From: Guillardia theta CCMP2712
Taxonomy: Eukaryota; Protista; Cryptophyta
Direction of reading: 5' to 3'
Length of the DNA: 32,835 nt
NCBI RefSeq assembly: GCF_000315625.1
Contig: NW_005434651.1
Span: forward strand, 58,195-91,029
Part shown: positions 144 to 16,600 of the stretch, piece after piece
How positions within the stretch are numbered: the stretch's first letter is position 1
Layout of the letters: each line of letters opens with the position of its first letter
Program-made: the position numbers and the translations under genes
The notes under the pieces: generated by a model
Database searches by the model: none
The model's input: the letters and a program-made list of their open reading frames with translations, nothing else
Told to the model about the DNA's origin: nothing

Positions 144-3100
144 CCCAATACCATGATGCAGACAAGATTTCTTCCTCCTCAGGTTCCTACCCCTACCCCT
201 ACACCTTCCCCTTCCCTTTCCCTTCCTCTGCCCCTGCCCCTTCCCCTGCCCCTTCCCTTTCTCCTTCTTCTGCCCCTGCCCCTGCTCTTGTACCTGCTTT
301 TGCTGAGAGAGCTCATCATTAATTTCCTGGATGGAACTGAAAAGTCCGATCTTACACGTGTACATAATGATACAATAGTGTTGATACAATTTCAATCTTT
401 AAATCCGATTACAAACTCTTACACTCCCTGCCTCTCTCCCTCTACTCCTCCCGTCTCCTCTGTCTTCCTTCCCCTCCCGTCTCTTCCTTCCTCCTCTCTT
501 TCCCCTCCCGTCTCTTCCTCCCGCACGCATCCTCCACTCTCTGCGCATTTCACACGTCTTGCCCCATCCTAGCCTGCATCGACGCCAGCAGCGCAAGTGA
601 AGGGTTCGTCGACGAGCAAACAGTGCGCTGAGCTCTAGATCGCAGCTTCGCTCGGTCTCCTATCCTCTCCACTCCCACCTCCTTCAGCTCCTGCTCGTTC
701 ATCGCCGCCAGCGCCTCGACATCGATCTTCTCTTCCTCAAACTTGGGCAGCAGCTCCTCCAGCCCGAGCTCCTTCAGCCAGGACTGGATCTTCTTCCTCG
801 ACGCCTCCTCCTCCCGTGCGCGCGATCCACCCACGGGCTGGTATGGCTCGTTATGCATCATCGAGAAGAGGAAGTTGTTAGCGATCTTCCGCTGCTTCCT
901 CATCCTCTTCTCTTCCAGGTTGCAACTCTCGTCAAGGTCATGGTTGTGCTCAGGCATGACGCGCAGAACGACCCAACCGGCGACCTCTCCCTCCACCTCG
1001 CTCACGTACTCGCACACCATCTCCCACTTGCAACAAGGCTTGTCGTACGCATGCCCCATCCCGTGCGTGCAGATATACTTCTTCTGCGTCCCCTTGAACC
1101 CTGTTGCCTTCCTCCTCGTCTCCCAGCGCGCCGGCCAGCAGCCGGGGTTGCCGTCAGGCTTCTCCTTGTCTCCCACGAACTGCTCCAGCTCGTCCATCTG
1201 CCAGCTCCTCTTCGCTTCCGGCGGTGACATGGTTGTGTTCCTCATCGACTTACCCGCCCTCAGGTCCGAGCGATGGTCAGCTTGCCGCAGCCTTGAGCCT
1301 GCATGGTCTCTGCTCTTGCTCCCTCCCTTCCCGTTGGACTTCTTCGTTCGCTTCTTCTGCTTCTTCTTGGAGGATCTTCATGACGAGTCTCCTCTGCCCC
1401 ACCGTCGGCATGAGGCACGGAGCAGCGATCGCGGTTGTTTTTCTCCTGCTCTTCTGCGATATGGTCCAGCATATCAGCGCTGGAGTCTGAGAGAACTTCT
1501 CGGTTGCCAGTGAAGCCATCGTCATGATCGTCTTCATGAATCACCGCTGCCATGTTCGCTCCTGTCTCCGTCATCTCTCAGTGCCTCCACCTCAGACCAC
1601 TGCTGGTTGTCGGCATGAGGATCTTGAACTGCCCTCAATTGGGGAGAGGGAATGTTTTTAGTCAAACTGGGCTTTGAAGCGAGACAGTTAAATACTGATA
1701 TCCAATCGTTCATAGTGGTTTCCAACTGCCCTTGTGCTGAGAGGAGTTCGTACTAGATTTTCGGCCTAGACCCTTCAGTTTCAAATTTCCCCTGTCCTGT
1801 TTCAATCCTCCCCCTGCTGGTTTCGCCGGCTGAACAGTTCCCGGCTGCCAGCCCAATGGCCGGCAGCGGCAGCTGAAAATGCAGACAGCGCCGTCCTGAC
1901 GCGACGACACCCTCTGTTGTCCACTACGTGTGATCCTCCCCCTCCCTCTTCTCCCCTGTCGTGTACTCCCTTACTAGAAACGAAGCCTGTCGAACCCTCT
2001 TCTGCCAACTTCGCCTATCCCCATCTTTCCATACCTCAACTCAGACACGTATCTTCTCTCCCATTGGACCTTCGAGTACTCTTATCCCCCTCCTCGTCTC
2101 GAGTCCTTATCTTCAGATCTCAACGAGTTGCATCCAGCCATCACCATGGCAGAGTGTGTACTGGAGATGGTGCAATCTATTCTCGTTAGCATGTGGAATG
2201 AAGCACGTATGGTGATGACCAATCAGGAGCAGCTGCAGAGCCTGGCTTCGGATGTGAAGGATGTCATGAGCCCGCTCCTCGAGCTTTTGCGTCGAAGCCT
2301 TCGCATAGATCAAGAGCAGCAGGTAGGCTTCGCCCTCAACCGTGTCTACTTCACCCTGTCGTCGGTGCTCGCATTCATCAAGATGAAGGCGGGGGGTCGA
2401 TCAGAGTCGTCTGTGACGCTGGAGGGCAAACCAGATGCCGAGCTTGGCGGAAAGCGAGCGGAGATGTACTTCGCGGTAGAAGCCTTGATGCAGGCCCTGC
2501 AGGGCGAAGGCGGCACGGCCATGAGCGAAGCAGGGGACGGGAAGCAAGACGAGGTGGTAACCAGCAAGCCAGCATACAGGAGGATGAAGGAGGCAGCCGA
2601 GCAGCTGGCAGCTGAAGCCGACATCTTCTCTTCCTCAGAGGCTGAGGAGAGCGACGGGACGCGCCATCCATGGTGTCTGAATCCCTTGGAGCTGCAGGTT
2701 GAGCGAAACAGTCGTGGCAAACCAAAGCATGTGCTGGGGTCCGGAGGGTTTGCGGTCGTGTACCGGGCCTCGTATCAAGGCACGGAGGTTGCGGTCAAGG
2801 AGCCTCATAATCCTCGCGATCTTGAAGGCAGCAAGCTGATGCGGAAAGCATTCTTCAGAGAGGCCAACAACCTCTTCAGAATACATCATCGCAACGTGAT
2901 AGAGCTGGTCGGAGCCATGGTCGTGGACGAGGAAGGGAACCCTTGCTTCCTGCTGGTCACCGAGCTACTGCGGCGACCCCTCACCGAGTACATCGAGGAG
3001 ACGATGAAGCCAGCGAGTGAGAGCGAGCGAAGAGCGCGGGGCCACGTGGTGATGCTTGGACTGGCGGAGGGTCTGGCGTACCTGCACTCTATGCGCATCA

Positions 3101-3621
3101 TCCATAGGGACATCAAGCCCCAGAACATCATGCTTGACGACAAGGACATCCCAAAACTCATCGACTTTGGGCTCTCAAAGGAGAAGGAAGAGATTGCTCA
3201 TTCCAAAGGAAGCACTAGGCTTGCAGGAACAATGAGCTGGATGTCGCCAGAGAAGCGACGAAGCAAGCCTACGTCCACCGCATCTGACGTGTACGCCCTC
3301 GGGCTGGTGATGATGAATGTGATGACGCTTGAGACGCCGCCGGAGAGCCAGGAGGAGCGCGAGAAGCTGCTCAAGGAAACGAGTGACAAGGGAGTGAGCG
3401 GGCAGGTGTCGCTATGGTGCATACACGAGGACCCGTCGAGGAGGCCGACGGCGGCTACTGTTGCAATGAGCTTGACGATGGACCGAGATCTATGCGGGGG
3501 AGGGGAAGTGCTGACAGGTGAGTCGAAGGTGTAAATAAGGAAGGATTGTTTTGTAAGAGACTTGTATAGGAGGCGATCGGCAAGTATCAGATACCACCGA
3601 TGACGGAGAAACTATTGTTCG
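144..3621 (+). repeat. Segmental direct duplication, copy A (~3.45 kb; partner at 13637-17087)
   Basis: Sequence from cccaatacc(a/c)gatgcagacaagatttc through the SAM gene, the intergenic region, kinase exon 1 and the intron is near-identical to 13637-17087. Similarity collapses at the start of the WD40 array. Confidence 0.93.
550..1574 (-). CDS. FAR1/MULE-like (WRKY-GCM1 fold) Zn-finger + C-terminal SAM domain protein, copy A (exon structure uncertain)
   Basis: ORF 550-1245 contains YICTHG...CCKWEMVCEY...GWVVLRVMPEHNHDL (C..C..W.V...HNH.L pattern of FAR1/AFT-type domains) and IQSWLKELGLEELLPKFEEEKIDVEALAAMNEQELKEVGVERIGDRAKL (classic SAM). The upstream MTETGAN ORF (1260-1574) is out of frame here but in frame in copy B. 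Confidence 0.7.
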
Positions 3622-4771
3622 ATGGCAGGAACGTTGCTCATTTCATGGACATTTTCGTCAGATTTTGATAGTCTCATTGTCAAGGGATGGCAGTAAGGTT
3701 GTAACAGGGCTAGATGACAACACTGCAAGAGTCTGGGAGGCAAGCAGTGGTAGGCAATCTGTTTGCTTTGAAGGACACACGAGAAATGTCAAATGTTGCG
3801 TATGGACTTGTGATGGAGGATTGATTGCATCGGGCTCTGATGACAAAACGGTGAGAGTGTGGGAGGCGAGCAGCGGTAAACAAATCAGCTGCTGTAGAGG
3901 ACACACAGATGGAGTTACTACCGTGGTATGGTCTGGCGATGAAAAGCTTGTTGTAGCTGGATCTTGGGATTCAACTATAAGGGTATGGGATGCGAGGGCT
4001 GGGAGGCAAATCAGCTGCTTGAAGGGGCATACAGATGGTATCTATAGCGTGTCGTTGTCGTGGGACTCGAGGATGATCGCTTCAGGCTCAGATGACCGCA
4101 CCGTGAGGATATGGGATGTGAGCAGTGGCAAGCAGCTGAGATGCTGTAGAGAGCACAATGGCAGCGTCACTTGTGTCTCGTGGTCAGAAGATGGAAGGAT
4201 GATTGCCTCCGGATCAGATGACGGGACTGTGGGGGTGTGGGAGGCGAGCAGTGGTAACTTAATCAGCTGTTGTGAAGGTCATGAGGGTAGTGTAATGATA
4301 GTTGCTTGGTCAAGAGATGGAAGGATGATTGCCTCCGGATCAGATGACGGGACTGTGGGGGTGTGGGAGGCGAGCAGTGGTAACTTAATCAGCTGTTGTG
4401 AAGGTCATGAGGGTAGTGTAATGATAGTTGCTTGGTCAAGAGATGGAAGGATGATTGCCTCCGGATCAGATGACGGGACTGTGAGGGTGTGGGAGGCGAG
4501 CAGTGGGAGGCCTATAAGATCATGCAAGGAGAAAACAGATTTTGTCAACAATGTCTCAGGAGCTGTGAGATTGATTGAGACAACGAGTGGGAAGCTGGGT
4601 TATCAGATTGACCGTTCGGAAGGACCTCGTCCGTTTCCTACTCATATTGCATGGCTGGGAAATGGACAGCTGATCGCTTCGGGCACTGATGATCAAAAAG
4701 TTCGTCTCTGGGAAGGGATGTTTTTTGAATTGAAGGAGATGAGGAGGTCGAAGCGCTTGAAGACGGCATGA
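2146..4771 (+). CDS. MLKL-like helical NTD - protein kinase - WD40 protein, copy 1 (exons 2146-3517, 3570-4771)
   Basis: Kinase motifs GSGGFAVV, VAVK, HRDIKPQN, DFG, WMSPE, SDVYALG. A 52-nt phase-1 intron ACAG|GTGAGT...TGTATAG|GA (3518-3569) joins in frame (GGDRQVSDTTDDGETIVRWQERCSFHGH) to the WD40 ORF 3665-4771, which has about 8 GH..WE/WD repeats. Confidence 0.88.
4189..4506 (+). repeat. 126-bp (one WD40 unit) tandem repeat, about 2.5 copies
   Basis: Units start at 4189, 4315 and 4441 (agatggaaggatgattgcctccggatcagatgacggg...); the first two are identical. Confidence 0.95.
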
Positions 4772-5204: not shown

Positions 5205-7704
5205 TCATGCTCTCATTCTTTTACCCGATTGTAATTGCCCTTTCATCTCCTCTGCATCGCCATCTTCGTTATCACTCCCTGCTCTTCCTCTTCTCCTCTT
5301 TTTTGACAGCCATTCTCTCCAATTGATGCTTACGCGTTTAGGACTCCTGACCCATAGAATGCCTTGCCATATCTTGATTGTCCTGTCCCAGGACCCAGAT
5401 GCAATCACTCTCCCATTCCACGACCATGATACGCATGACACACCACTCGCATGACCTCTCAAATACCAGATTCTCTTGCCTGTGACGACCTCCCATATTC
5501 GCAAGGTTTTGTCCCATGAGCTTGATGCGATCATCCTTGCATCGCCCGACCATGACACACTGGTAACAACGTGTGTATGTCCCTCACAGCAGCTCATCTG
5601 TCTGCCCCCCTGTACCTCCCATATTCTCACAGTATTGTCGTGTGAACCTGATGCAATCATCTTGCTATCTGCAGAAAATGATACGCAGGTGACAGAGTGG
5701 GTGTGACCTTCTAGACAAGTCATCTCGCTTCCACTGCTTGCTTCCCATATTCTAATAGTCCCATCTTCGGATCCTGAAGCAATCATCTTCCCATCTCCCG
5801 ACCATGACACGCTAGTAACTTTGTTATTCGTACCTTGCAGGCGAAGAATTTCTCTCCCATTACTCACCTCCCACACTCTTAAAGTTTCGTCATTTGAACC
5901 CGAGACAACCAATCTCCCATCTGCCGACCATGATACACTTTTGACACAGTCTGTATGTCCCAAAAGACAGCTGATTTGATTTCGACTATTCGCATCCCAT
6001 ATCCTTATTGACCGGTCGTCTGAGCTCGAGGCAATAAATCTTCCATCAGCTGACCAAGAAACACAGTTCACGATGCCCGAGTGACCTCGAAAGCATGCAA
6101 CCTCCTGGTAAGTGTTTGGATCCCATAATCTCACAGTCTCATCAGCTGACCCAGACACTATGAACTTTCCGTCCCATGACCAGCAAACACTGCACACGCT
6201 GCCAATGTCTCCACGCAAACAGCTGTTGTACCTCCATTGAACCATATTGTCATCTTCTTCAGAACCCCTGATTAAACTCCCTCCCCTCCCTACAAAACAA
6301 AAGAATTAGCCCAAGAAATCCAAGCATGTTTTGACCTTTAAGAACCTGACCTCCCCCGCATAGATCTCGGTCCATCGTCAAGCTCATTGCAACAGTAGCC
6401 GCCGTCGGCCTCCTCGACGGGTCCTCGTGTATGCACCATAGCGACACCTGCCCGCTCACTCCCTTGTCACTCGTTTCCTTGAGCAGCTTCTCGCGCTCCT
6501 CCTGGCTCTCCGGCGGCGTCTCAAGCGTCATCACATTCATCATCACCAGCCCGAGGGCGTACACGTCAGATGCGGTTGTTGAGGGCTCGCCTCGTCGCTT
6601 CTCTGGCGACATCCAATCTAGAGTGCCTCCCCCTGCACTGTGCACTGGTGCAACCATGGATTGTTTCTCCTTCGAAAGCCCCAGGTCGATGAGTTTTGGG
6701 ATGTCCTTGTCGTCAAGCATGATGTTCTGGGGCTTGATGTCCCTATGGATGATGCGCATAGAGTGCAGGTACGCCAGACCCTCCGCCAGTCCAAGCATCA
6801 CCACGTGGCCCCGCGCTCTTCGCTCGCTCTCACTCGCTGGCTTCATCGTCTCCTCGATGTACTCGGTGAGGGGTCGCCGCAGTAGCTCGGTGACCAGCAG
6901 GAAGCAAGGGTTCCCTTCCTCGTCCACGACCATGGCTCCGACCAGCTCTATCACGTTGCGATGATGTATTCTGAAGAGGTTGTTGGCCTCTCTGAAGAAT
7001 GCTTTCCGCATCAGCTTGCTGCCTTCAAGATCGCAAGGATTATGAGGCTCCTTGACCGCAACCTCCGTGCCTTGATACGAGGCCCGGTACACGACCGCAA
7101 ACCCTCCGGACCCCAGCACATGCTTTGGTTGGCCACGACTGTTTCGCTCAACCTGCAGCTCCAAGGGATTCAGACACCATGGATGGCGCGTCCCGTCGCT
7201 CTCCTCAGCCTCTGAGGAAGAGAAGATGTCGGCTTCAGCTGCCAGCTGCTCGGCTGCCTCCTTCATCCTCCTGTATGCTGGCTTGCTGGTTACCACCTCG
7301 TCTTGCTTCCCGTCCCCTGCTTCGCTCATGGCCGTGCCGCCTTCGCCCTGCAGGGCCTGCATCAAGGCTTCTACCGCGAAGTACATCTCCGCTCGCTTTC
7401 CGCCAAGCTCGGCATCTAGTTTGCCCTCCAGCGTCACAGACGACTCTGATCGACCCCCCGCCTTCATCTTGATGAATGCGAGCACCGACGACAGGGTGAA
7501 GTAGACACGGTTGAGGGCGAAGCCTACCTGCTGCTCTTGATCTATGCGAAGGCTTCGACGCAAAAGCTCGAGGAGCGGGCTCATGACATCCTTCACATCC
7601 GAAGCCAGGCTCTGCAGCTGCTCCTGATTGGCCATCGCCAAGTGTGCTTCATTCCACATGCTAACGAGAATAGATTGTACCATTCCGTGAACGCTCTCTG
7701 CCAT
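5205..7704 (-). CDS. MLKL-like helical NTD - protein kinase - WD40 protein, copy 2 (exons 7704-6336, 6289-5205)
   Basis: Kinase ORF 6259-7704 (DLG variant). A putative 46-nt intron AAAG|GTCAAA...GCTAAT...TTTGTAG|GG (6335-6290) joins in frame (GRGGSLIRGSEEDDNMVQW) to ORF 5205-6245 with 7 WD40 repeats. The donor site is weaker than in the other copies. Confidence 0.82.
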
Positions 7705-9655
7705 GTTGGGAATCTAGGCAAGGAAAGCAAATCAGATCGAATTAAGAAGGTTTAGGAGTATGGGGGAGTAATGCGGACGGATTTGATTGGGATTTGGGAA
7801 TAGATTGTGAAGATGTCATGACTACATCTTTTTGAAGGCAGCACAGATGAGTCATGTAGAAGGGGATGAGACGCTTTGGCGATGTTGCATGCGAAGGAGA
7901 CGCATTCTAACAAGAGTCAGGTAGTTGCACTGTAGGTGGGCAGGCAGATGGAGAGGACTTGCAGGGATTGACGGTGTGATGCACACCCTCCATATGTGTA
8001 CCCCACCCTACGTTATGTCAATTTGGACCCCTACCCTTCTAGATGATTTCCTACCTACGTTGACCACCCACCCCTGCATCCATCCCCTCTATCCGAAAGG
8101 AACGCATCCTCTTCGGGCGCCCTCCTAGCTTCAACGTCACACTTCTCCATCATCCCCCGATCCCTCCAGACAATTGTTTCCCTTTATGTGCACAACACGA
8201 ACAGAAATCCAACCTTGACATGATTAACCCGCATTACTCCCCCATACTCCTAAACCTTCTTAATTCGATCTGATTTGCTTTCCTTGCCTAGATTCCCAAC
8301 ATGGCAGAGAGCGTTCACGGAATGGTACAATCTATTCTCGTTAGCATGTGGAATGAAGCACACTTGGCGATGGCCAATCAGGAGCAGCTGCAGAGCCTGG
8401 CTTCGGATGTGAAGGATGTCATGAGCCCGCTCCTCGAGCTTTTGCGTCGAAGCCTTCGCATAGATCAAGAGCAGCAGGTAGGCTTCGCCCTCAACCGTGT
8501 CTACTTCACCCTGTCGTCGGTGCTCGCATTCATCAAGATGAAGGCGGGGGGTCGATCAGAGTCGTCTGTGACGCTGGAGGGCAAACTAGATGCCGAGCTT
8601 GGCGGAAAGCGAGCGGAGATGTACTTCGCGGTAGAAGCCTTGATGCAGGCCCTGCAGGGCGAAGGCGGCACGGCCATGAGCGAAGCAGGGGACGGGAAGC
8701 AAGACGAGGTGGTAACCAGCAAGCCAGCATACAGGAGGATGAAGGAGGCAGCCGAGCAGCTGGCAGCTGAAGCCGACATCTTCTCTTCCTCAGAGGCTGA
8801 GGAGAGCGACGGGACGCGCCATCCATGGTGTCTGAATCCCTTGGAGCTGCAGGTTGAGCGAAACAGTCGTGGCCAACCAAAGCATGTGCTGGGGTCCGGA
8901 GGGTTTGCGGTCGTGTACCGGGCCTCGTATCAAGGCACGGAGGTTGCGGTCAAGGAGCCTCATAATCCTTGCGATCTTGAAGGCAGCAAGCTGATGCGGA
9001 AAGCATTCTTCAGAGAGGCCAACAACCTCTTCAGAATACATCATCGCAACGTGATAGAGCTGGTCGGAGCCATGGTCGTGGACGAGGAAGGGAACCCTTG
9101 CTTCCTGCTGGTCACCGAGCTACTGCGGCGACCCCTCACCGAGTACATCGAGGAGACGATGAAGCCAGCGAGTGAGAGCGAGCGAAGAGCGCGGGGCCAC
9201 GTGGTGATGCTTGGACTGGCGGAGGGTCTGGCGTACCTGCACTCTATGCGCATCATCCATAGGGACATCAAGCCCCAGAACATCATGCTTGACGACAAGG
9301 ACATCCCAAAACTCATCGACCTGGGGCTTTCGAAGGAGAAACAATCCATGGTTGCACCAGTGCACAGTGCAGGGGGAGGCACTCTAGATTGGATGTCGCC
9401 AGAGAAGCGACGAGGCGAGCCCTCAACAACCGCATCTGACGTGTACGCCCTCGGGCTGGTGATGATGAATGTGATGACGCTTGAGACGCCGCCGGAGAGC
9501 CAGGAGGAGCGCGAGAAGCTGCTCAAGGAAACGAGTGACAAGGGAGTGAGCGGGCAGGTGTCGCTATGGTGCATACACGAGGACCCGTCGAGGAGGCCGA
9601 CGGCGGCTACTGTTGCGATGAGCTTGACGATGGACCGAGATCTATGCGGGGGAGG
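6350..9655. repeat. Large inverted repeat: arms ~6350-7776 and 8229-9655 (~1.43 kb), 452-bp spacer
   Basis: Kinase exons of copies 2 and 3 plus about 70 bp of upstream sequence are reverse complements (7704 pairs with 8301, 7776 with 8229). The proteins are identical up to DLCGGG. Confidence 0.95.
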
Positions 9656-10904: not shown

Positions 10905-11206
10905 CTCGCAGGTGGCGATCAACGTGTCGGAGTACCAGGGAGTGGCGGGCGGGGCCGACCCGCGCTACAACTCGGTTGTCTGGTCGTCCGTGAAGAAGTA
11001 GGTGCTGTAGGTGCAGCGGAAGGTGCAGGCCATCGGCTGCAGGGTGAGGTGGACCGTGGCCGTCTGCAGTCATCGGTGGGCACGACGCAGCCAAGTACCT
11101 CGAGTGCATCCGGCGGGCGGAGGCGATGGGCGACCGCCGCATCGACAGCATCCCGTGCGAGAACCACTACACCGCCTGCTTCGACTCGCTCGCTATTTAC
11201 TTCTAG
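10905..11206 (+). pseudogene. GC-rich decayed coding fragment of unknown origin
   Basis: Codon-like GC3-rich reading SQVAINVSEYQGVAGGADPRYNSVVWSSVKK*VL*VQRK... and, after a frameshift, DAAKYLECIRRAEAMGDRRIDSIPCENHYTACFDSLAIYF*, with internal TAG stops. Confidence 0.4.
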
Positions 11207-11483
11207 CGAAGTAAATACATTGGAAACGTGAGGAGACAAACTTTTATAAATCAATCTAAAATTTCAATGATTTTTACGAACACCCAAAAAATACATTTAT
11301 TCCTCTTTATTTTCCTTACCGAATCCCTATTATATTTTATTCAATTAAAATAATAGCTGCGCATTGGTGCGGATCCGATCATCACACAAAATAACCAAAA
11401 ACAAACGAGCGCACACACGGAGTGTGCCAGAGCAAACATAATATCAATGAAAATTATGAATCCTTCAAGGATCATATAACAAA

Positions 11484-11840
11484 AGAGGCAAAGGGGCAGG
11501 TGAATTGAATTTCACCCTTTGCCAAAATTCACCCTTTGCACACACACACGGCTTAATAATTCTCATCTTTATTTTTTTCGCCTCTATAACATGCATAATT
11601 TATTTAGGCAAAGGGGCAAAGGGTGAAATCGTTATTTTCATATTCTATTCTATATACCCATAAAGTAAACAAAATTTTATATTATCCTAAAATTTGAATT
11701 TCACCCTTTGCCCCTTTGCCTAACGTCTATATATCCTCCTTTTACTCATCTTTTACCCTTGTACCCAGCTAAAACATGGCGAAGGGTCCCCTTTGCCACC
11801 CCTTTGCCACCCCTTTGCCACCCTTTGCCACCCTTCGCCT
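11484..11840. repeat. Array of (CAC)CCTTTGCC direct and inverted repeats, including a perfect 26-bp inverted repeat (11604-11629 / 11698-11723)
   Basis: ttaggcaaaggggcaaagggtgaaat is the reverse complement of atttcaccctttgcccctttgcctaa; four tandem ccctttgcca units lie at ~11789-11832. Confidence 0.9.
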
Positions 11841-11930
11841 ACCTCCTTTTTATTAAAACCCCTTTATCATTACCATTATTATACTAAATTATATTCTTTA
11901 TTTTATTATTATCTATCTTTCTTTATTATA

Positions 11931-12680
11931 AATGTCATGTGACAATAGATATCAAAATTTATATCAATAGGCAGCACAAACAGGACAACTTTACAACCTG
12001 AAATAAATCAAATCAATGCCGATATCAATATCCTTTATTCTAATGTCGATGTGCTCAATGATGAGACAAATTTACTATTTAATCGATATGAGACGATCGA
12101 AGCGCTTGCAATTGATACATCCAATAACCTAATATCAACATCTAATCAATTATATGAAGGTATCGAAGACAATTCGAATGAGATCAATTTTATTCTGCGC
12201 CGCATTAATGATCTATCACAGACCGAAGAAACAGTCATCATGAACCAAATGAGAATGTTGATCTATTTGAAATATGATCTTGATCTTGAAAAATCAACAA
12301 TTAAATTCGCTTTGGAAAATGGGAGCTTAATATCGATTCAATACATCAAAAATAAATTAGATGAATTAGCAGGAGCTGACCAAGCCGAGGATGCAGAGGA
12401 TGCAGCAACAGACGCAGCACAGGCAGGGGCCGATGCTGTCAAGCAGCTACTAGGGAAGCAGTTATTGCTTTGATGCGATATCTTCAAGATATAGATGATC
12501 AATTGAAAGTTCAAGATGATGTCATTAAGGGTTATTCAAGAGACCTTATAGATGGTGAAAATTTAGGCTTTGGATCTAATCTGAATTTTATATATGATTT
12601 AGAAATTGTGACATTGCCTAATGGCTGCAATGTCAATAAATGGACAACTCGACTTTTAGGCGAACAGATCTTAACATTAG
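11931..12680 (+). pseudogene. Disrupted coiled-coil, virus-like (possibly structural) protein gene
   Basis: ATG at 11931 is followed by stops/frameshift, then TTLQPEINQINADINILYSNVDVLNDETNLL...TSNNLISTSNQL (ORFs 12051-12473 and 12470-12763 in shifted frames). Confidence 0.45.
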
Positions 12681-12878
12681 GCGAAGAATTGACAGATAAT
12701 ATTCGCGCATTCTTTTGTTTCTTAGCTCTCGATATTCTGGGTCATTTGTGTATTTTTGTTTGATATATTCATTTATTCTCTTGCATTCTTTATCGTGAAA
12801 TTCTTTATCAGTTGCAATCTTCTTTTTATAGTGCAGTGCTTGTGGGGTTGGCATTGTTTTCGAAAGAAACAAATTCAC
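12633..12878 (-). CDS. Small basic hypothetical protein (virus-like)
   Basis: MPTPQALHYKKKIATDKEFHDKECKRINEYIKQKYTNDPEYRELRNKRMREYY; AT-rich, K/R/Y-rich helical small ORF. Confidence 0.45.
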   Translation of the reverse strand: MNLFLSKTMPTPQALHYKKKIATDKEFHDKECKRINEYIKQKYTNDPEYRELRNKRMREYYLSILRLMLRSVRLKVELSIY

Positions 12879-12954
12879 TTTAATATAAAGTAAGAAAGTT
12901 TTTATCTATTTACTTTATATATATTAAAAAACAATCAAATCATTTTTATATAAA

Positions 12955-13167
12955 TTAGATTATCCGGCTCTTCCATGTGTTACCTTCTTTGTATAGTTGG
13001 TATGTTGCCATGCTTGCGGCTGTAGGCTTGGCAGTGCCACCGGTTGAAATGATGTCATTTAATCTTTTTATTATCTTTCGAGCTGTTATTTTGTCCTTAT
13101 TATCTTCGTATTGCTGTTTTTTCTTATCTAATATATCGGCTTTCTTCTTATCATAATATTTCTTCTA
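12955..13167 (-). pseudogene. 5'-truncated small basic virus-like ORF
   Basis: Manual translation: *KKYYDKKKADILDKKKQQYEDNKDKITARKIIKRLNDIISTGGTAKPTAASMATYQLYKEGNTWKSRII*; it lacks a start codon and abuts GC-rich sequence. Confidence 0.45.
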
Positions 13168-13636: not shown

Positions 13637-16600
13637 CCCAATACCACGATGCAGACAAGATTTCTTCCTCCTCAGGTTCCTACCCCTACCCCTACCCCTA
13701 CCCCTACCCCTTCCCTTTCCCCTTCTTCTGCCCCTGCCCCTGCCCCTGCCCCTGCTCTTGTACCTGCTTTTGCTGAGAGAGCTCATCATTAATTTCCTGG
13801 ATGGAACTGAAAAGTCCGATCTTACACGTGTACATAATGATACAATAGTGTTGATATAATTTCAATCTTTAAATCCGATTACAAACTCTTACACTCCCTT
13901 CCTCTCTCCCTCTACCCCTCCCGTCTCCTCTGTCTTCCTTCCCCTCCCGTCCCTTCCTTCCTCCTCTCTTTCCCCTCCCGTCTCTTCCTCCCGCACGCAT
14001 CCTCCACTCTCTGCGCATTTCACACGTCTTGCCCCATCCTAGCCTGCATCGACGCCAGCAGCGCAAGTGAAGGGTTCGTCGACGAGCAAACAGTGCGCTG
14101 AGCTCTAGATCGCAGCTTCGCTCGGTCTCCTATCCTCTCCACTCCCACCTCCTTCAGCTCCTGCTCGTTCATCGCCGCCAGTGCCTCGACATCGATCTTC
14201 TCTTCCTCAAACTTGGGCAGCAGCCTCCAGCCCGAGCTCCTTCAGCCAGGACTGGATCTTCTTCCTCGACGCCTCCTCCTCCCGTGCGCGCGATCCACCC
14301 ACGGGCTGGTATGGCTCGTTATGCATCATCGAGAAGAGGAAGTTGTTAGCGATCTTCCGCTGCTTCCTCATCCTCTTCTCTTCCAGGTTGCAACTCTCGT
14401 CAAGGTCATGGTTGTGCTCAGGCATGACGCGCAGAACGACCCAACCGGCGACCTCTCCCTCCACCTCGCTCACGTACTCGCACACCATCTCCCACTTGCA
14501 ACAAGGCTTGTCGTACGCATGCCCCATCCCGTGCGTGCAGATATACTTCTTCTGCGTCCCCTTGAACCCTGTTGCCTTCATCCTCGTCTCGGTCACTCGC
14601 CATGGCCCCAGCGGATAGTCCTTGGGAAGGTTTGCTGGGATGTCGTACGTGCGGCAAAGCTGCAGGATCTGCCAGCTCCTCTTCGCTTCCGGCGGTGACA
14701 TGGTTGTGTTCCTCATCGACTTACCCGCCCTCAGGTCCGAGCGATGGTCAGCTTGCCGCAGCCTTGAGCCTGCATGGTCTCTGCTCGCCTCCTGCGGCTG
14801 CTCCTGCACAGCGCCTTTGCCATGATCTGCTCTCCTGGGAGGATCTTCATGACGAGTCTCCTCTGCCCCACCGTCGGCATGAGGCACGGAGCAGCGATCG
14901 CGGTTGTTTTTCTCCTGCTCTTCTGCGATATGGTCCAGCATATCAGCGCTGGAGTCTGAGAGAACTTCTCGGTTGCCAGTGAAGCCATCGTCATGATCGT
15001 CTTCATGAATCACCGCTGCCATGTTCGCTCCTGTCTCCGTCATCTCTCAGTGCCTCCACCTCAGACCACTGCTGGTTGTCGGCATGAGGATCTTGAACTG
15101 CCCTCAATTGGGGAGAGGGAATGTTTTTAGTCAAACTGGGCTTTGAAGCGAGACAGTTAAATACTGATATCCAATCGTTCATAGTGGTTTCCAACTGCCC
15201 TTGTGCTGAGAGGAGTTCGTACTAGATTTTCGGCCTAGACCCTTCAGTTTCAAATTTCCCCTGTCCTGTTTCAATCCTCCCCCTGCTGGTTTCGCCGGCT
15301 GAACAGTTCCCGGCTGCCAGCCCAATGGCCGGCAGCGGCAGCTGAAAATGCAGACAGCGCCGTCCTGACGCGACGACACCCTCTGTTGTCCACTACGTGT
15401 GATCCTCCCCCTCCCTCTTCTCCCCTGTCGTGTACTCCCTTACTAGAAACGAAGCCTGTCGAACCCTCTTCTGCCAACTTCGCCTATCCCCATCTTTCCA
15501 TACCTCAACTCAGACACGTATCTTCTCTCCCATTGGACCTTCGAGTACTCTTATCCCCCTCCTCGTCTCGAGTCCTTATCTTCAGATCTCAACGAGTTGC
15601 ATCCAGCCATCACCATGGCAGAGTGTGTACTGGAGATGGTGCAATCTATTCTCGTTAGCATGTGGAATGAAGCACGTATGGTGATGACCAATCAGGAGCA
15701 GCTGCAGAGCCTGGCTTCGGATGTGAAGGATGTCATGAGCCCGCTCCTCGAGCTTTTGCGTCGAAGCCTTCGCATAGATCAAGAGCAGCAGGTAGGCTTC
15801 GCCCTCAACCGTGTCTACTTCACCCTGTCGTCGGTGCTCGCATTCATCAAGATGAAGGCGGGGGGTCGATCAGAGTCGTCTGTGACGCTGGAGGGCAAAC
15901 TAGATGCCGAGCTTGGCGGAAAGCGAGCGGAGATGTACTTCGCGGTAGAAGCCTTGATGCAGGCCCTGCAGGGCGAAGGCGGCACGGCCATGAGCGAAGC
16001 AGGGGACGGGAAGCAAGACGAGGTGGTAACCAGCAAGCCAGCATACAGGAGGATGAAGGAGGCAGCCGAGCAGCTGGCAGCTGAAGCCGACATCTTCTCT
16101 TCCTCAGAGGCTGAGGAGAGCGACGGGACGCGCCATCCATGGTGTCTGAATCCCTTGGAGCTGCAGGTTGAGCGAAACAGTCGTGGCAAACCAAAGCATG
16201 TGCTGGGGTCCGGAGGGTTTGCGGTCGTGTACCGGGCCTCGTATCAAGGCACGGAGGTTGCGGTCAAGGAGCCTCATAATCCTTGCGATCTTGAAGGCAG
16301 CAAGCTGATGCGGAAAGCATTCTTCAGAGAGGCCAACAACCTCTTCAGAATACATCATCGCAACGTGATAGAGCTGGTCGGAGCCATGGTCGTGGACGAG
16401 GAAGGGAACCCTTGCTTCCTGCTGGTCACCGAGCTACTGCGGCGACCCCTCACCGAGTACATCGAGGAGACGATGAAGCCAGCGAGTGAGAGCGAGCGAA
16501 GAGCGCGGGGCCACGTGGTGATGCTTGGACTGGCGGAGGGTCTGGCGTACCTGCACTCTATGCGCATCATCCATAGGGACATAACTCCCCAGAACATCAT

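Follow-up and report, generated by a model that had tools for sequence, protein, structure and literature searches.

Copy A, one of four closely similar genes in a 32,835-nucleotide stretch of the genome of the cryptophyte alga Guillardia theta CCMP2712 (contig NW_005434651.1, positions 58,195 to 91,029 of the forward strand; hereafter the window), encodes a protein whose residues 1 to about 120 are, with a probability that we put at roughly 0.8, a divergent member of the MLKL_N/HeLo-like superfamily of four-helix bundles, and stand at the very start of the product of one spliced gene, which encodes in turn a bundle, a brace helix, a catalytically competent TKL-type Ser/Thr kinase and a WD40 propeller. 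An earlier note on this DNA, made by eye, had proposed a bundle of the MLKL/HeLo type in this position, and the kinship is now supported from four independent sides: the MLKL_N family of Pfam, reached via relatives of the window protein; the fold, for which MLKL is the top match; the ESM Atlas; and the order of the domains. It is on these four lines that the placement is based. Kinship to the executioner domain of MLKL in turn suggests, by analogy, that this unicellular alga has a receptor of a cell-death or immune type.

Sequence relationship to MLKL_N

Twenty members of the family to which the window protein belongs were scanned singly against Pfam at E<=10. MLKL_N (PF22215; a profile of 142 positions with a curated gathering cut-off of 27 bits) was the only family matched by more than two of the 20, and the five members that matched it did so in one shared register: P0005 (29.2 bits, E 7.3e-7; residues 14-137 on profile positions 9-126), P0011 (28.4 bits; residues 12-135 on 6-122), P0007 (22.8 bits; residues 12-142 on 6-129), P0003 (16.2 bits; residues 34-141 on 28-128) and a window copy (13.6 bits; residues 11-74 on 6-68). 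The first two exceed the gathering cut-off, and both are hit by profile A2, which was built only from the paralogs of the G. theta genome itself, at E 6e-15 and 1e-7 in a search of 1.84e9 proteins. As P0005 and P0011 both pass the cut-off and are clearly homologous to the window domain, the link of the latter to MLKL_N is transitive but sound; judged by sequence, membership of the window copy in the Pfam family holds only in this transitive sense. A search with PF22215 gave no match in 14 control genomes. Weak matches to the same profile on two other contigs (C66 and C15) were judged on inspection to be unrelated proteins and set aside.

A language-model feature search of the ESM Atlas returned clusters of MLKL_N, MCAfunc and RPW8 at scores of 0.91 to 0.87, those at the top being MLKL_N/MCAfunc (0.90-0.91), whilst a shape search of the same atlas placed plant proteins composed of MCAfunc and a kinase first (template modelling (TM) score 0.61-0.64) and also found proteins composed of DUF7792 and ARM repeats (TM about 0.6). 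The further likeness to RPW8 and MCAfunc bundles which had been suggested from the spacing of the helices is seen only in features and fold, by way of these clusters and of a structural match to the CC-R domain of NRG1 (Z 8.1); neither RPW8 nor MCAfunc was among the 25 Pfam families that the most members matched.

Predicted fold of the N-terminal domain

A model of the bundle was made with AlphaFold2 from the 20-sequence alignment A4 (predicted local distance difference test (pLDDT) 78.8, predicted TM score (pTM) 0.73). The expectation of four helices within the first 120 or so residues held good, with helices predicted at residues 2-22, 27-51, 54-82 and 96-119; these are followed by a disordered linker (122-131) and by a further helix (133-139/142-164), in which lies the segment AYRRMKEAAEQLAAE that had been singled out as brace-like. 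Residues E19/A20, L33, L45, A63, L71, G102 and L118 belong to the conserved core of the domain.

The model was compared with solved structures in two ways, and the N-terminal domain of MLKL came out best in both. In a Foldseek search of 350,542 chains of the PDB, ranks 1 to 3 were MLKL N-terminal domains (2msv, 6zvo and 6zz1; TM by target 0.59-0.65) and five of the top seven hits were MLKL executioner-domain chains (TM 0.50-0.58 by query, 0.59-0.70 by target), with further MLKL entries and AtMLKL3 below the top three. VIA-align, an exhaustive comparison with 48,161 representative chains which is independent of Foldseek, ranked the human MLKL N-terminal domain first (6ux8_A; Z 11.4, root-mean-square deviation (rmsd) 3.2 Å over 132 residues); this chain holds the human domain together with its brace, and the alignment covers residues 3-154 of the model. 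Mouse MLKL (4btf; Z 10.7, 2.3 Å over 100 residues) and AtMLKL3 (6ka4; Z 10.1, 2.5 Å over 119 residues) were also recovered. The accepted superposition of AtMLKL3 on animal MLKL has an rmsd of 3.7-4.0 Å (bioRxiv 10.1101/681015).

A model of residues 1-457, bundle to kinase (pLDDT 79.7, pTM 0.84), was aligned end to end by only two of its 50 best Foldseek hits, AtMLKL3 (6ka4, 541 columns) and mouse MLKL (4btf, 462 columns). The rmsd values of 11.6 and 18.6 Å, respectively, and the low TM scores indicate that the orientation of the domains relative to one another is different or uncertain.

Gene structure and domain order of copy A

Copy A begins with an open reading frame (ORF) on the forward strand with its first ATG at 2146 and its end at 3534, the protein starting MAECVLE-MVQSILVSMWNEA; the peptide quoted in the earlier note was found in the window from 2167. 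That 2146 marks the true N-terminus is supported by the homologs, which also start MAE. The MLKL_N-like bundle (residues 1-121) occupies 2146-2508 and the brace-like helix (residues 133-164) 2542-2637, between the bundle and the kinase domain (residues 194-437; 2725-3456), all on the forward strand. Pfam places Pkinase at residues 194-414 (E 1.8e-41) and PK_Tyr_Ser-Thr at residues 194-437, so that the expected succession of a brace-like segment and a kinase, as in MLKL, was indeed found.

Just before the end of the kinase ORF stands a canonical splice donor, ACAG|GTGAGT (3517|3518), and contigs from two public sequencing runs (X1 and X6) that lack 3518-3569 represent the spliced form. These contigs are termed transcript-like here as the RNA origin of the two runs is a guess. 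The 52-nucleotide GT..AG intron thus defined (3518-3569) separates the kinase exon from a second exon (3570-4771, forward strand) which encodes a linker and a WD40 beta-propeller (Pfam WD40, E 7.9e-78, eight stretches). When 2146-3517 is joined to 3570-4771 the result is in frame, with 857 codons and zero internal stops, and the junction reads ...GGGEVLT-G-GDRQVSD... and runs on into the WD40 ORF. An acceptor at 3671, which would also be in frame, was ruled out as the end of the intron by the contigs that show it at 3518-3569. One long contig spans 1900-3515 with no junction, and the N-terminal domain and the kinase therefore share one exon. A single spliced gene hence encodes the four-helix bundle, the brace helix, the kinase and the WD40 propeller, in that order. 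Raw reads from another run (X20) numbered six, too few for strand, transcript ends or expression level to be read from them. Within the WD40 exon (3665-4771) two identical copies of a unit of 42 residues (MIASGSDDGTVGVWEASSGNLISCCEGHEGSVMIVAWSRDGR) directly adjoin each other, a sign that the unit was duplicated recently.

The kinase domain and the charge of the bundle

A motif scan found every catalytic motif of the kinase kept in copy A: the glycine loop GSGGFAVV, VAVK with its lysine at residue 218, the glutamate of helix alphaC, HRDIKPQN, DFG (340) and SPE. The kinase of copy A is thus probably active rather than a pseudokinase. Copies B and C read DLG, and copy D combines HRDITPQN with DLG. 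Three distant paralogs elsewhere in the genome (L005:658-2097 on contig C112, L009:1964-5662 on C29 and L010:1854-5606 on C99) have the degenerate motifs HGD and GFE, and that on C29 also has VAVL for VAVK. The pseudokinase of MLKL is characterized by HGK and GFE (PMC6013482), and the resemblance of the algal motifs to these may be the outcome of convergent decay. The nearest solved sequences to the kinase domain are PknB, CTR1, IRAK4, FERONIA, BRI1 and B-Raf; as neither MLKL nor any RIPK was among the best 60 solved sequences, no claim of orthology is made for this domain.

Among the relatives from metagenomes basic bundles prevail, with an isoelectric point (pI) of 8.5-9.8. Where helix 3 is joined to helix 4 (residues ~79-95 of the window copies, nucleotides ~2380-2430), alignment A4 shows that the relatives keep a basic loop, K(K/R)RG(K/R)xRS...LP(L/V)D, in place of which the window copies have KMKAGGRSESS. 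The basic loop of the relatives could be a lipid-binding patch or a site of phosphorylation.

The family within the genome and beyond

The genome searched comprises 87.1 Mb in 669 contigs, the window being C23:58195-91029. Besides the four copies in the window, five further loci carry the bundle at 25-40% identity, in every case with a kinase after it; the C-terminal repeats are of WD40 type in three of them (C112, C29 and C99) and of ARM type in the other two (C51 and C44). On C29 and C99 the bundle, kinase and WD40 repeats lie in single uninterrupted ORFs, of 1232 and 1250 residues. When 1.84e9 representative proteins were searched with profile A2, 16 reached E<=1e-3 (best E 2.5e-19); in those long enough to tell, a kinase comes after the N-terminal domain, with ARM-like tails in P0008 and P0016. 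The sources of these relatives are cryptophyte transcriptomes and metagenome contigs, the nearest named organisms being the cryptophytes Hanusia phi and Proteomonas sulcata. With four copies in the window, five further loci and 16 relatives found by profile, the N-terminal domain is not a chance ORF; the bundle-kinase family is real, conserved and narrow, occurring only in cryptophytes and in metagenome contigs that are not assigned to an organism. Word-indexed homolog searches with the window protein and with the N-terminal region of P0003 returned only the query, the method being too insensitive for this family.

On contig C51 an ORF of 645 residues with a caspase domain (Peptidase_C14, E 7.9e-9, residues 23-211; L011:4500-6437, minus strand) lies directly upstream of the bundle-kinase-ARM paralog L011:1835-4192 and on the same strand, thus bringing a possible protease and a possible executioner side by side.

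The same genome also has three canonical MLKL_N proteins which lack a kinase and score 37-46 bits against the Pfam family: L022:1477-2922 (minus strand, C451), L023:1153-1872 (plus strand, C93) and L024:393-1772 (plus strand, C341). Apart from the absent kinase, they differ from the window family in that the bundle is C-terminal to repeats of 28 residues or to a short leader, and the two groups are no more than remotely related (hhalign probability 7%). In the proteins on C451 and C341 some eight near-identical copies of the 28-residue repeat (KAGDIGKTIVDQVKDKTGVDLQSDDLRN) precede the bundle, and the MLKL_N copy on C341 is apparently frameshifted inside the bundle.

Tandem copies in the window

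The four copies start at 2146 (A), 7704 on the minus strand (B), 8301 (C) and 15615 (D), and their N-terminal domains are 96-99% identical. The bundle of copy B (96-97% identical) lies at 7342-7704 on the minus strand, that of copy C at 8301-8663 on the plus strand and that of copy D, 99% identical to copy A, at 15615-15977, also on the plus strand; each of the four genes is followed by a WD40 ORF. Amongst these otherwise near-identical copies the most divergent stretch is the activation loop (3166-3276 in copy A). A transcript-like contig of high depth with the loop of the B/C type differs by 38 substitutions and nine indels, nearly all of which fall within 3166-3276.

On the minus strand the window carries, at 550-1245 and again at 14207-15043, a gene that combines a SAM domain (SAM_1, E 1.6e-12) with a region rich in Cys and His. 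In each case this gene stands head to head with a copy of the kinase gene (A and D, respectively), along with which it has been duplicated. Between the third and fourth gene copies lies an AT-rich island (11000-13000) with a GC content of 0.33-0.40, compared with about 0.55 elsewhere.

Points against the placement and alternative explanations

The assignment to the MLKL_N/HeLo-like superfamily should be considered with some caution, as a number of the results speak against it. The window copy itself, in which MLKL_N is the sole Pfam match of the first 185 residues, falls under the cut-off of that family (13.3-13.6 bits, E ~0.05). No MLKL chain came up at E<=10 when the sequences of the PDB were searched with profiles A2 and A4 and with protein P0005; the closest matches, to beta-enolase (E 1.3), the coiled coil of Prp19 (E 6.6e-4) and the P1 domain of CheA, were taken as spurious matches between helices. 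A comparison of alignment A4 with two of the canonical MLKL_N domains of the same genome by hhalign gave a probability of 6.9% (P 0.005) in the expected register, from a template that is too shallow for support. HeLo (PF14479), Helo_like_N (PF17111), HELL, RPW8 (PF05659) and MCAfunc (PF19584) were all absent from the 25 Pfam families matched by the most of the 20 members at E<=10. As regards the fold, the Foldseek E-values of 0.16-0.26 are not significant, unrelated helical bundles (the THATCH domain of HIP1R, HHM and designed proteins) reach a VIA-align Z of 10-11, within 1 Z of MLKL, and the method itself warns that values below about 13 can be generic for helical folds; for these last two reasons structure alone is not decisive. 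Finally, the bundles of the window are acidic (computed net charge -3, pI 5.0), and with a kinase that looks active the logic of the MLKL pseudokinase switch need not apply.

The last two points lend weight to a serious rival, that the domain is a true homolog of MLKL_N which does not kill, serving instead as a regulatory, oligomerisation or targeting module (at the membrane or on the cytoskeleton) of a signalling kinase that is active and has a partner-binding WD40 or ARM domain. Such a non-lethal role in signalling or targeting is on balance the less probable account. It would agree with the retention of all the catalytic motifs, with an acidic bundle so unlike the mostly basic ones of the relatives, with what is reported of plant MLKLs, namely an immunity that is separable from cell death and an association with microtubules (bioRxiv 10.1101/681015), and with related plant folds, such as DUF7792 with ARM repeats and the N-terminal domains of PUB proteins, which are not known killers. 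Against it stand features more reminiscent of receptors, namely the tandem expansion, the variable activation loop and the variable repeat domains, together with the caspase-domain gene that adjoins one paralog. Moreover, some paralogs have lost catalytic residues yet retain the bundle, which suggests that the conserved output is the bundle and not phosphotransfer.

Some of the other points would be expected if the domain were a generic four-helix bundle or coiled coil, for instance one through which a TKL kinase of this lineage dimerises, whose likeness to MLKL had arisen by convergence and not from a shared ancestor: many unrelated helical bundles attain a similar Z, the Foldseek E-values lack significance, the sequence searches of the PDB gave no MLKL, with the Prp19 coiled coil (E 6.6e-4) as the best hit of one of them, and the window copy does not reach the Pfam cut-off. 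We regard this as unlikely. Convergence does not readily account for the two relatives that pass the cut-off, for five members in the same register along about 120 of the 142 profile positions, or for the fact that no other Pfam family was matched by more than two of the 20; nor does it explain why language-model and shape searches should independently arrive at MLKL_N/MCAfunc, why the profile had no match in the 14 control genomes, or why the N-terminal position, with a brace and then a kinase to follow, reproduces the order of MLKL. A five-helix bundle of the THATCH or talin R13 type, made up of the four helices and the 'brace' and binding actin or the cytoskeleton, is most improbable: although the THATCH core of HIP1R (Z 11.1), that of Sla2 (Z 10.2) and talin R13 (Z 9.0) score well in VIA-align and appear in the Foldseek list too, their rmsd values of 7.0, 5.1 and 4.4 Å, respectively, compare poorly with the 2.3-3.2 Å of the MLKLs, neither Pfam nor the feature-based search supports them, and THATCH domains are C-terminal in endocytic adaptors, not N-terminal in kinases.

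A possible mechanism

If the bundle is indeed MLKL_N/HeLo-like, as we favour, a mode of action can be outlined by analogy with the MLKLs of animals and plants, a family marked by a bundle that on oligomerisation permeabilises membranes or kills cells and that binds lipids by way of a basic surface. In the resting state the brace and kinase would hold the bundle inactive. Something that happens at the variable repeats, WD40 or ARM, would then alter the state of the kinase, for example by phosphorylation of the variable activation loop, either by the kinase itself or in trans; the bundle would thereby be freed, the protein would oligomerise and the bundle would engage a membrane, with a flux of ions or lysis and death of the cell as the outcome. 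On such a scheme one polypeptide would unite the sensor, the switch (the kinase) and the executioner. Kinship to MLKL_N in sequence and fold, the catalytic motifs, the splicing, the order of the domains and the range of the family are results of the analysis; it is from analogy that we infer the autoinhibition, the route of activation, the activity on or permeabilisation of membranes and the role in immunity or cell death. The tandem expansion, the variable activation loop, the repetitive WD40 units and the caspase gene beside one paralog all fit a receptor of the immune or cell-death kind.

A bolder version, which we consider doubtful, would see in the protein a complete necroptosis-like module: the variable WD40 (or ARM) sensor would detect a viral or other non-self cue, the active kinase would play the part of RIPK3, the RHIM kinase upstream of animal MLKL that phosphorylates its activation loop, in cis or between subunits, and the freed bundle would permeabilise a membrane and kill the infected cell.

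Comparison with known systems

The closest parallel is vertebrate MLKL, in which a four-helix-bundle (HeLo) executioner is followed by two brace helices and a pseudokinase (PDB 4BTF, 2MSV and 6UX8). The order of bundle, brace and kinase fold is the same, vertebrate MLKL is the best structural match (Z 11.4 and 10.7), relatives of the algal domain pass the Pfam MLKL_N threshold, and the HGK/GFE of MLKL is echoed by the HGD/GFE of the algal paralogs on C112, C29 and C99. However, copy A itself keeps VAVK, HRD, DFG and the glycine loop and so does not resemble a pseudokinase, its bundle is acidic (pI 5.0), the identity to MLKL is only 15-16%, and HMMER gave no match to MLKL chains. The C-terminal fusion to WD40 or ARM repeats, furthermore, has no counterpart in the MLKLs of animals or plants.

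A HeLo-like bundle, a brace and a kinase-like domain are likewise common to the algal proteins and the plant MLKL/MCAfunc-kinase proteins (AtMLKL1-3, PDB 6KA4; wheat Pm13). In plant MLKLs, however, the kinase-like domain is a pseudokinase and the C-terminus is rich in serine (bioRxiv 10.1101/681015), whereas the algal copy has an active-looking kinase and WD40 repeats in their place, and MCAfunc was not among the 25 Pfam families matched by the most members of the algal family. With the HeLo/HELL-NLRs of fungi and the RPW8-type (CC-R) NLRs of plants, in which a bundle is joined to a NOD and to WD40, ANK, TPR or LRR repeats, the likeness is one of design: an N-terminal bundle, a central switch and a C-terminal repeat sensor of highly similar WD40 repeats, accompanied by tandem expansion of the genes. 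Here the difference is in the central module, which is a protein kinase in the alga instead of a NACHT or NB-ARC NTPase, and in the absence of HeLo, Helo_like_N and RPW8 from those 25 Pfam families. Full-text searches of the literature found no description of MLKL-like bundles in cryptophytes, the co-mention of Guillardia and MLKL that they returned being concerned with RIP kinases.

In animals, plants and fungi, regulated cell death or immunity is carried out by four-helix bundles of the MLKL type, and it has been proposed that the MLKLs of plants and animals are convergent; as for unicellular algae, we know of almost no cell-autonomous receptors for death or immunity. The gene described here is a candidate for such a receptor. 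To what is known of these modules the cryptophyte bundle-brace-kinase family adds an apparently active kinase, a fusion to WD40 or ARM repeats, and a tandem expansion with both active-looking and degenerate (HGD/GFE) paralogs. The control of such a bundle by a kinase fold can thus be studied in a third lineage, far removed from the other two, and the family also bears on the antiquity of the module. Should the necroptosis-like reading prove to be true, the death switch composed of a bundle and a kinase would either predate animals and plants or have arisen a third time outside them, and the HGD/GFE paralogs would represent the same drift towards a pseudokinase as MLKL.

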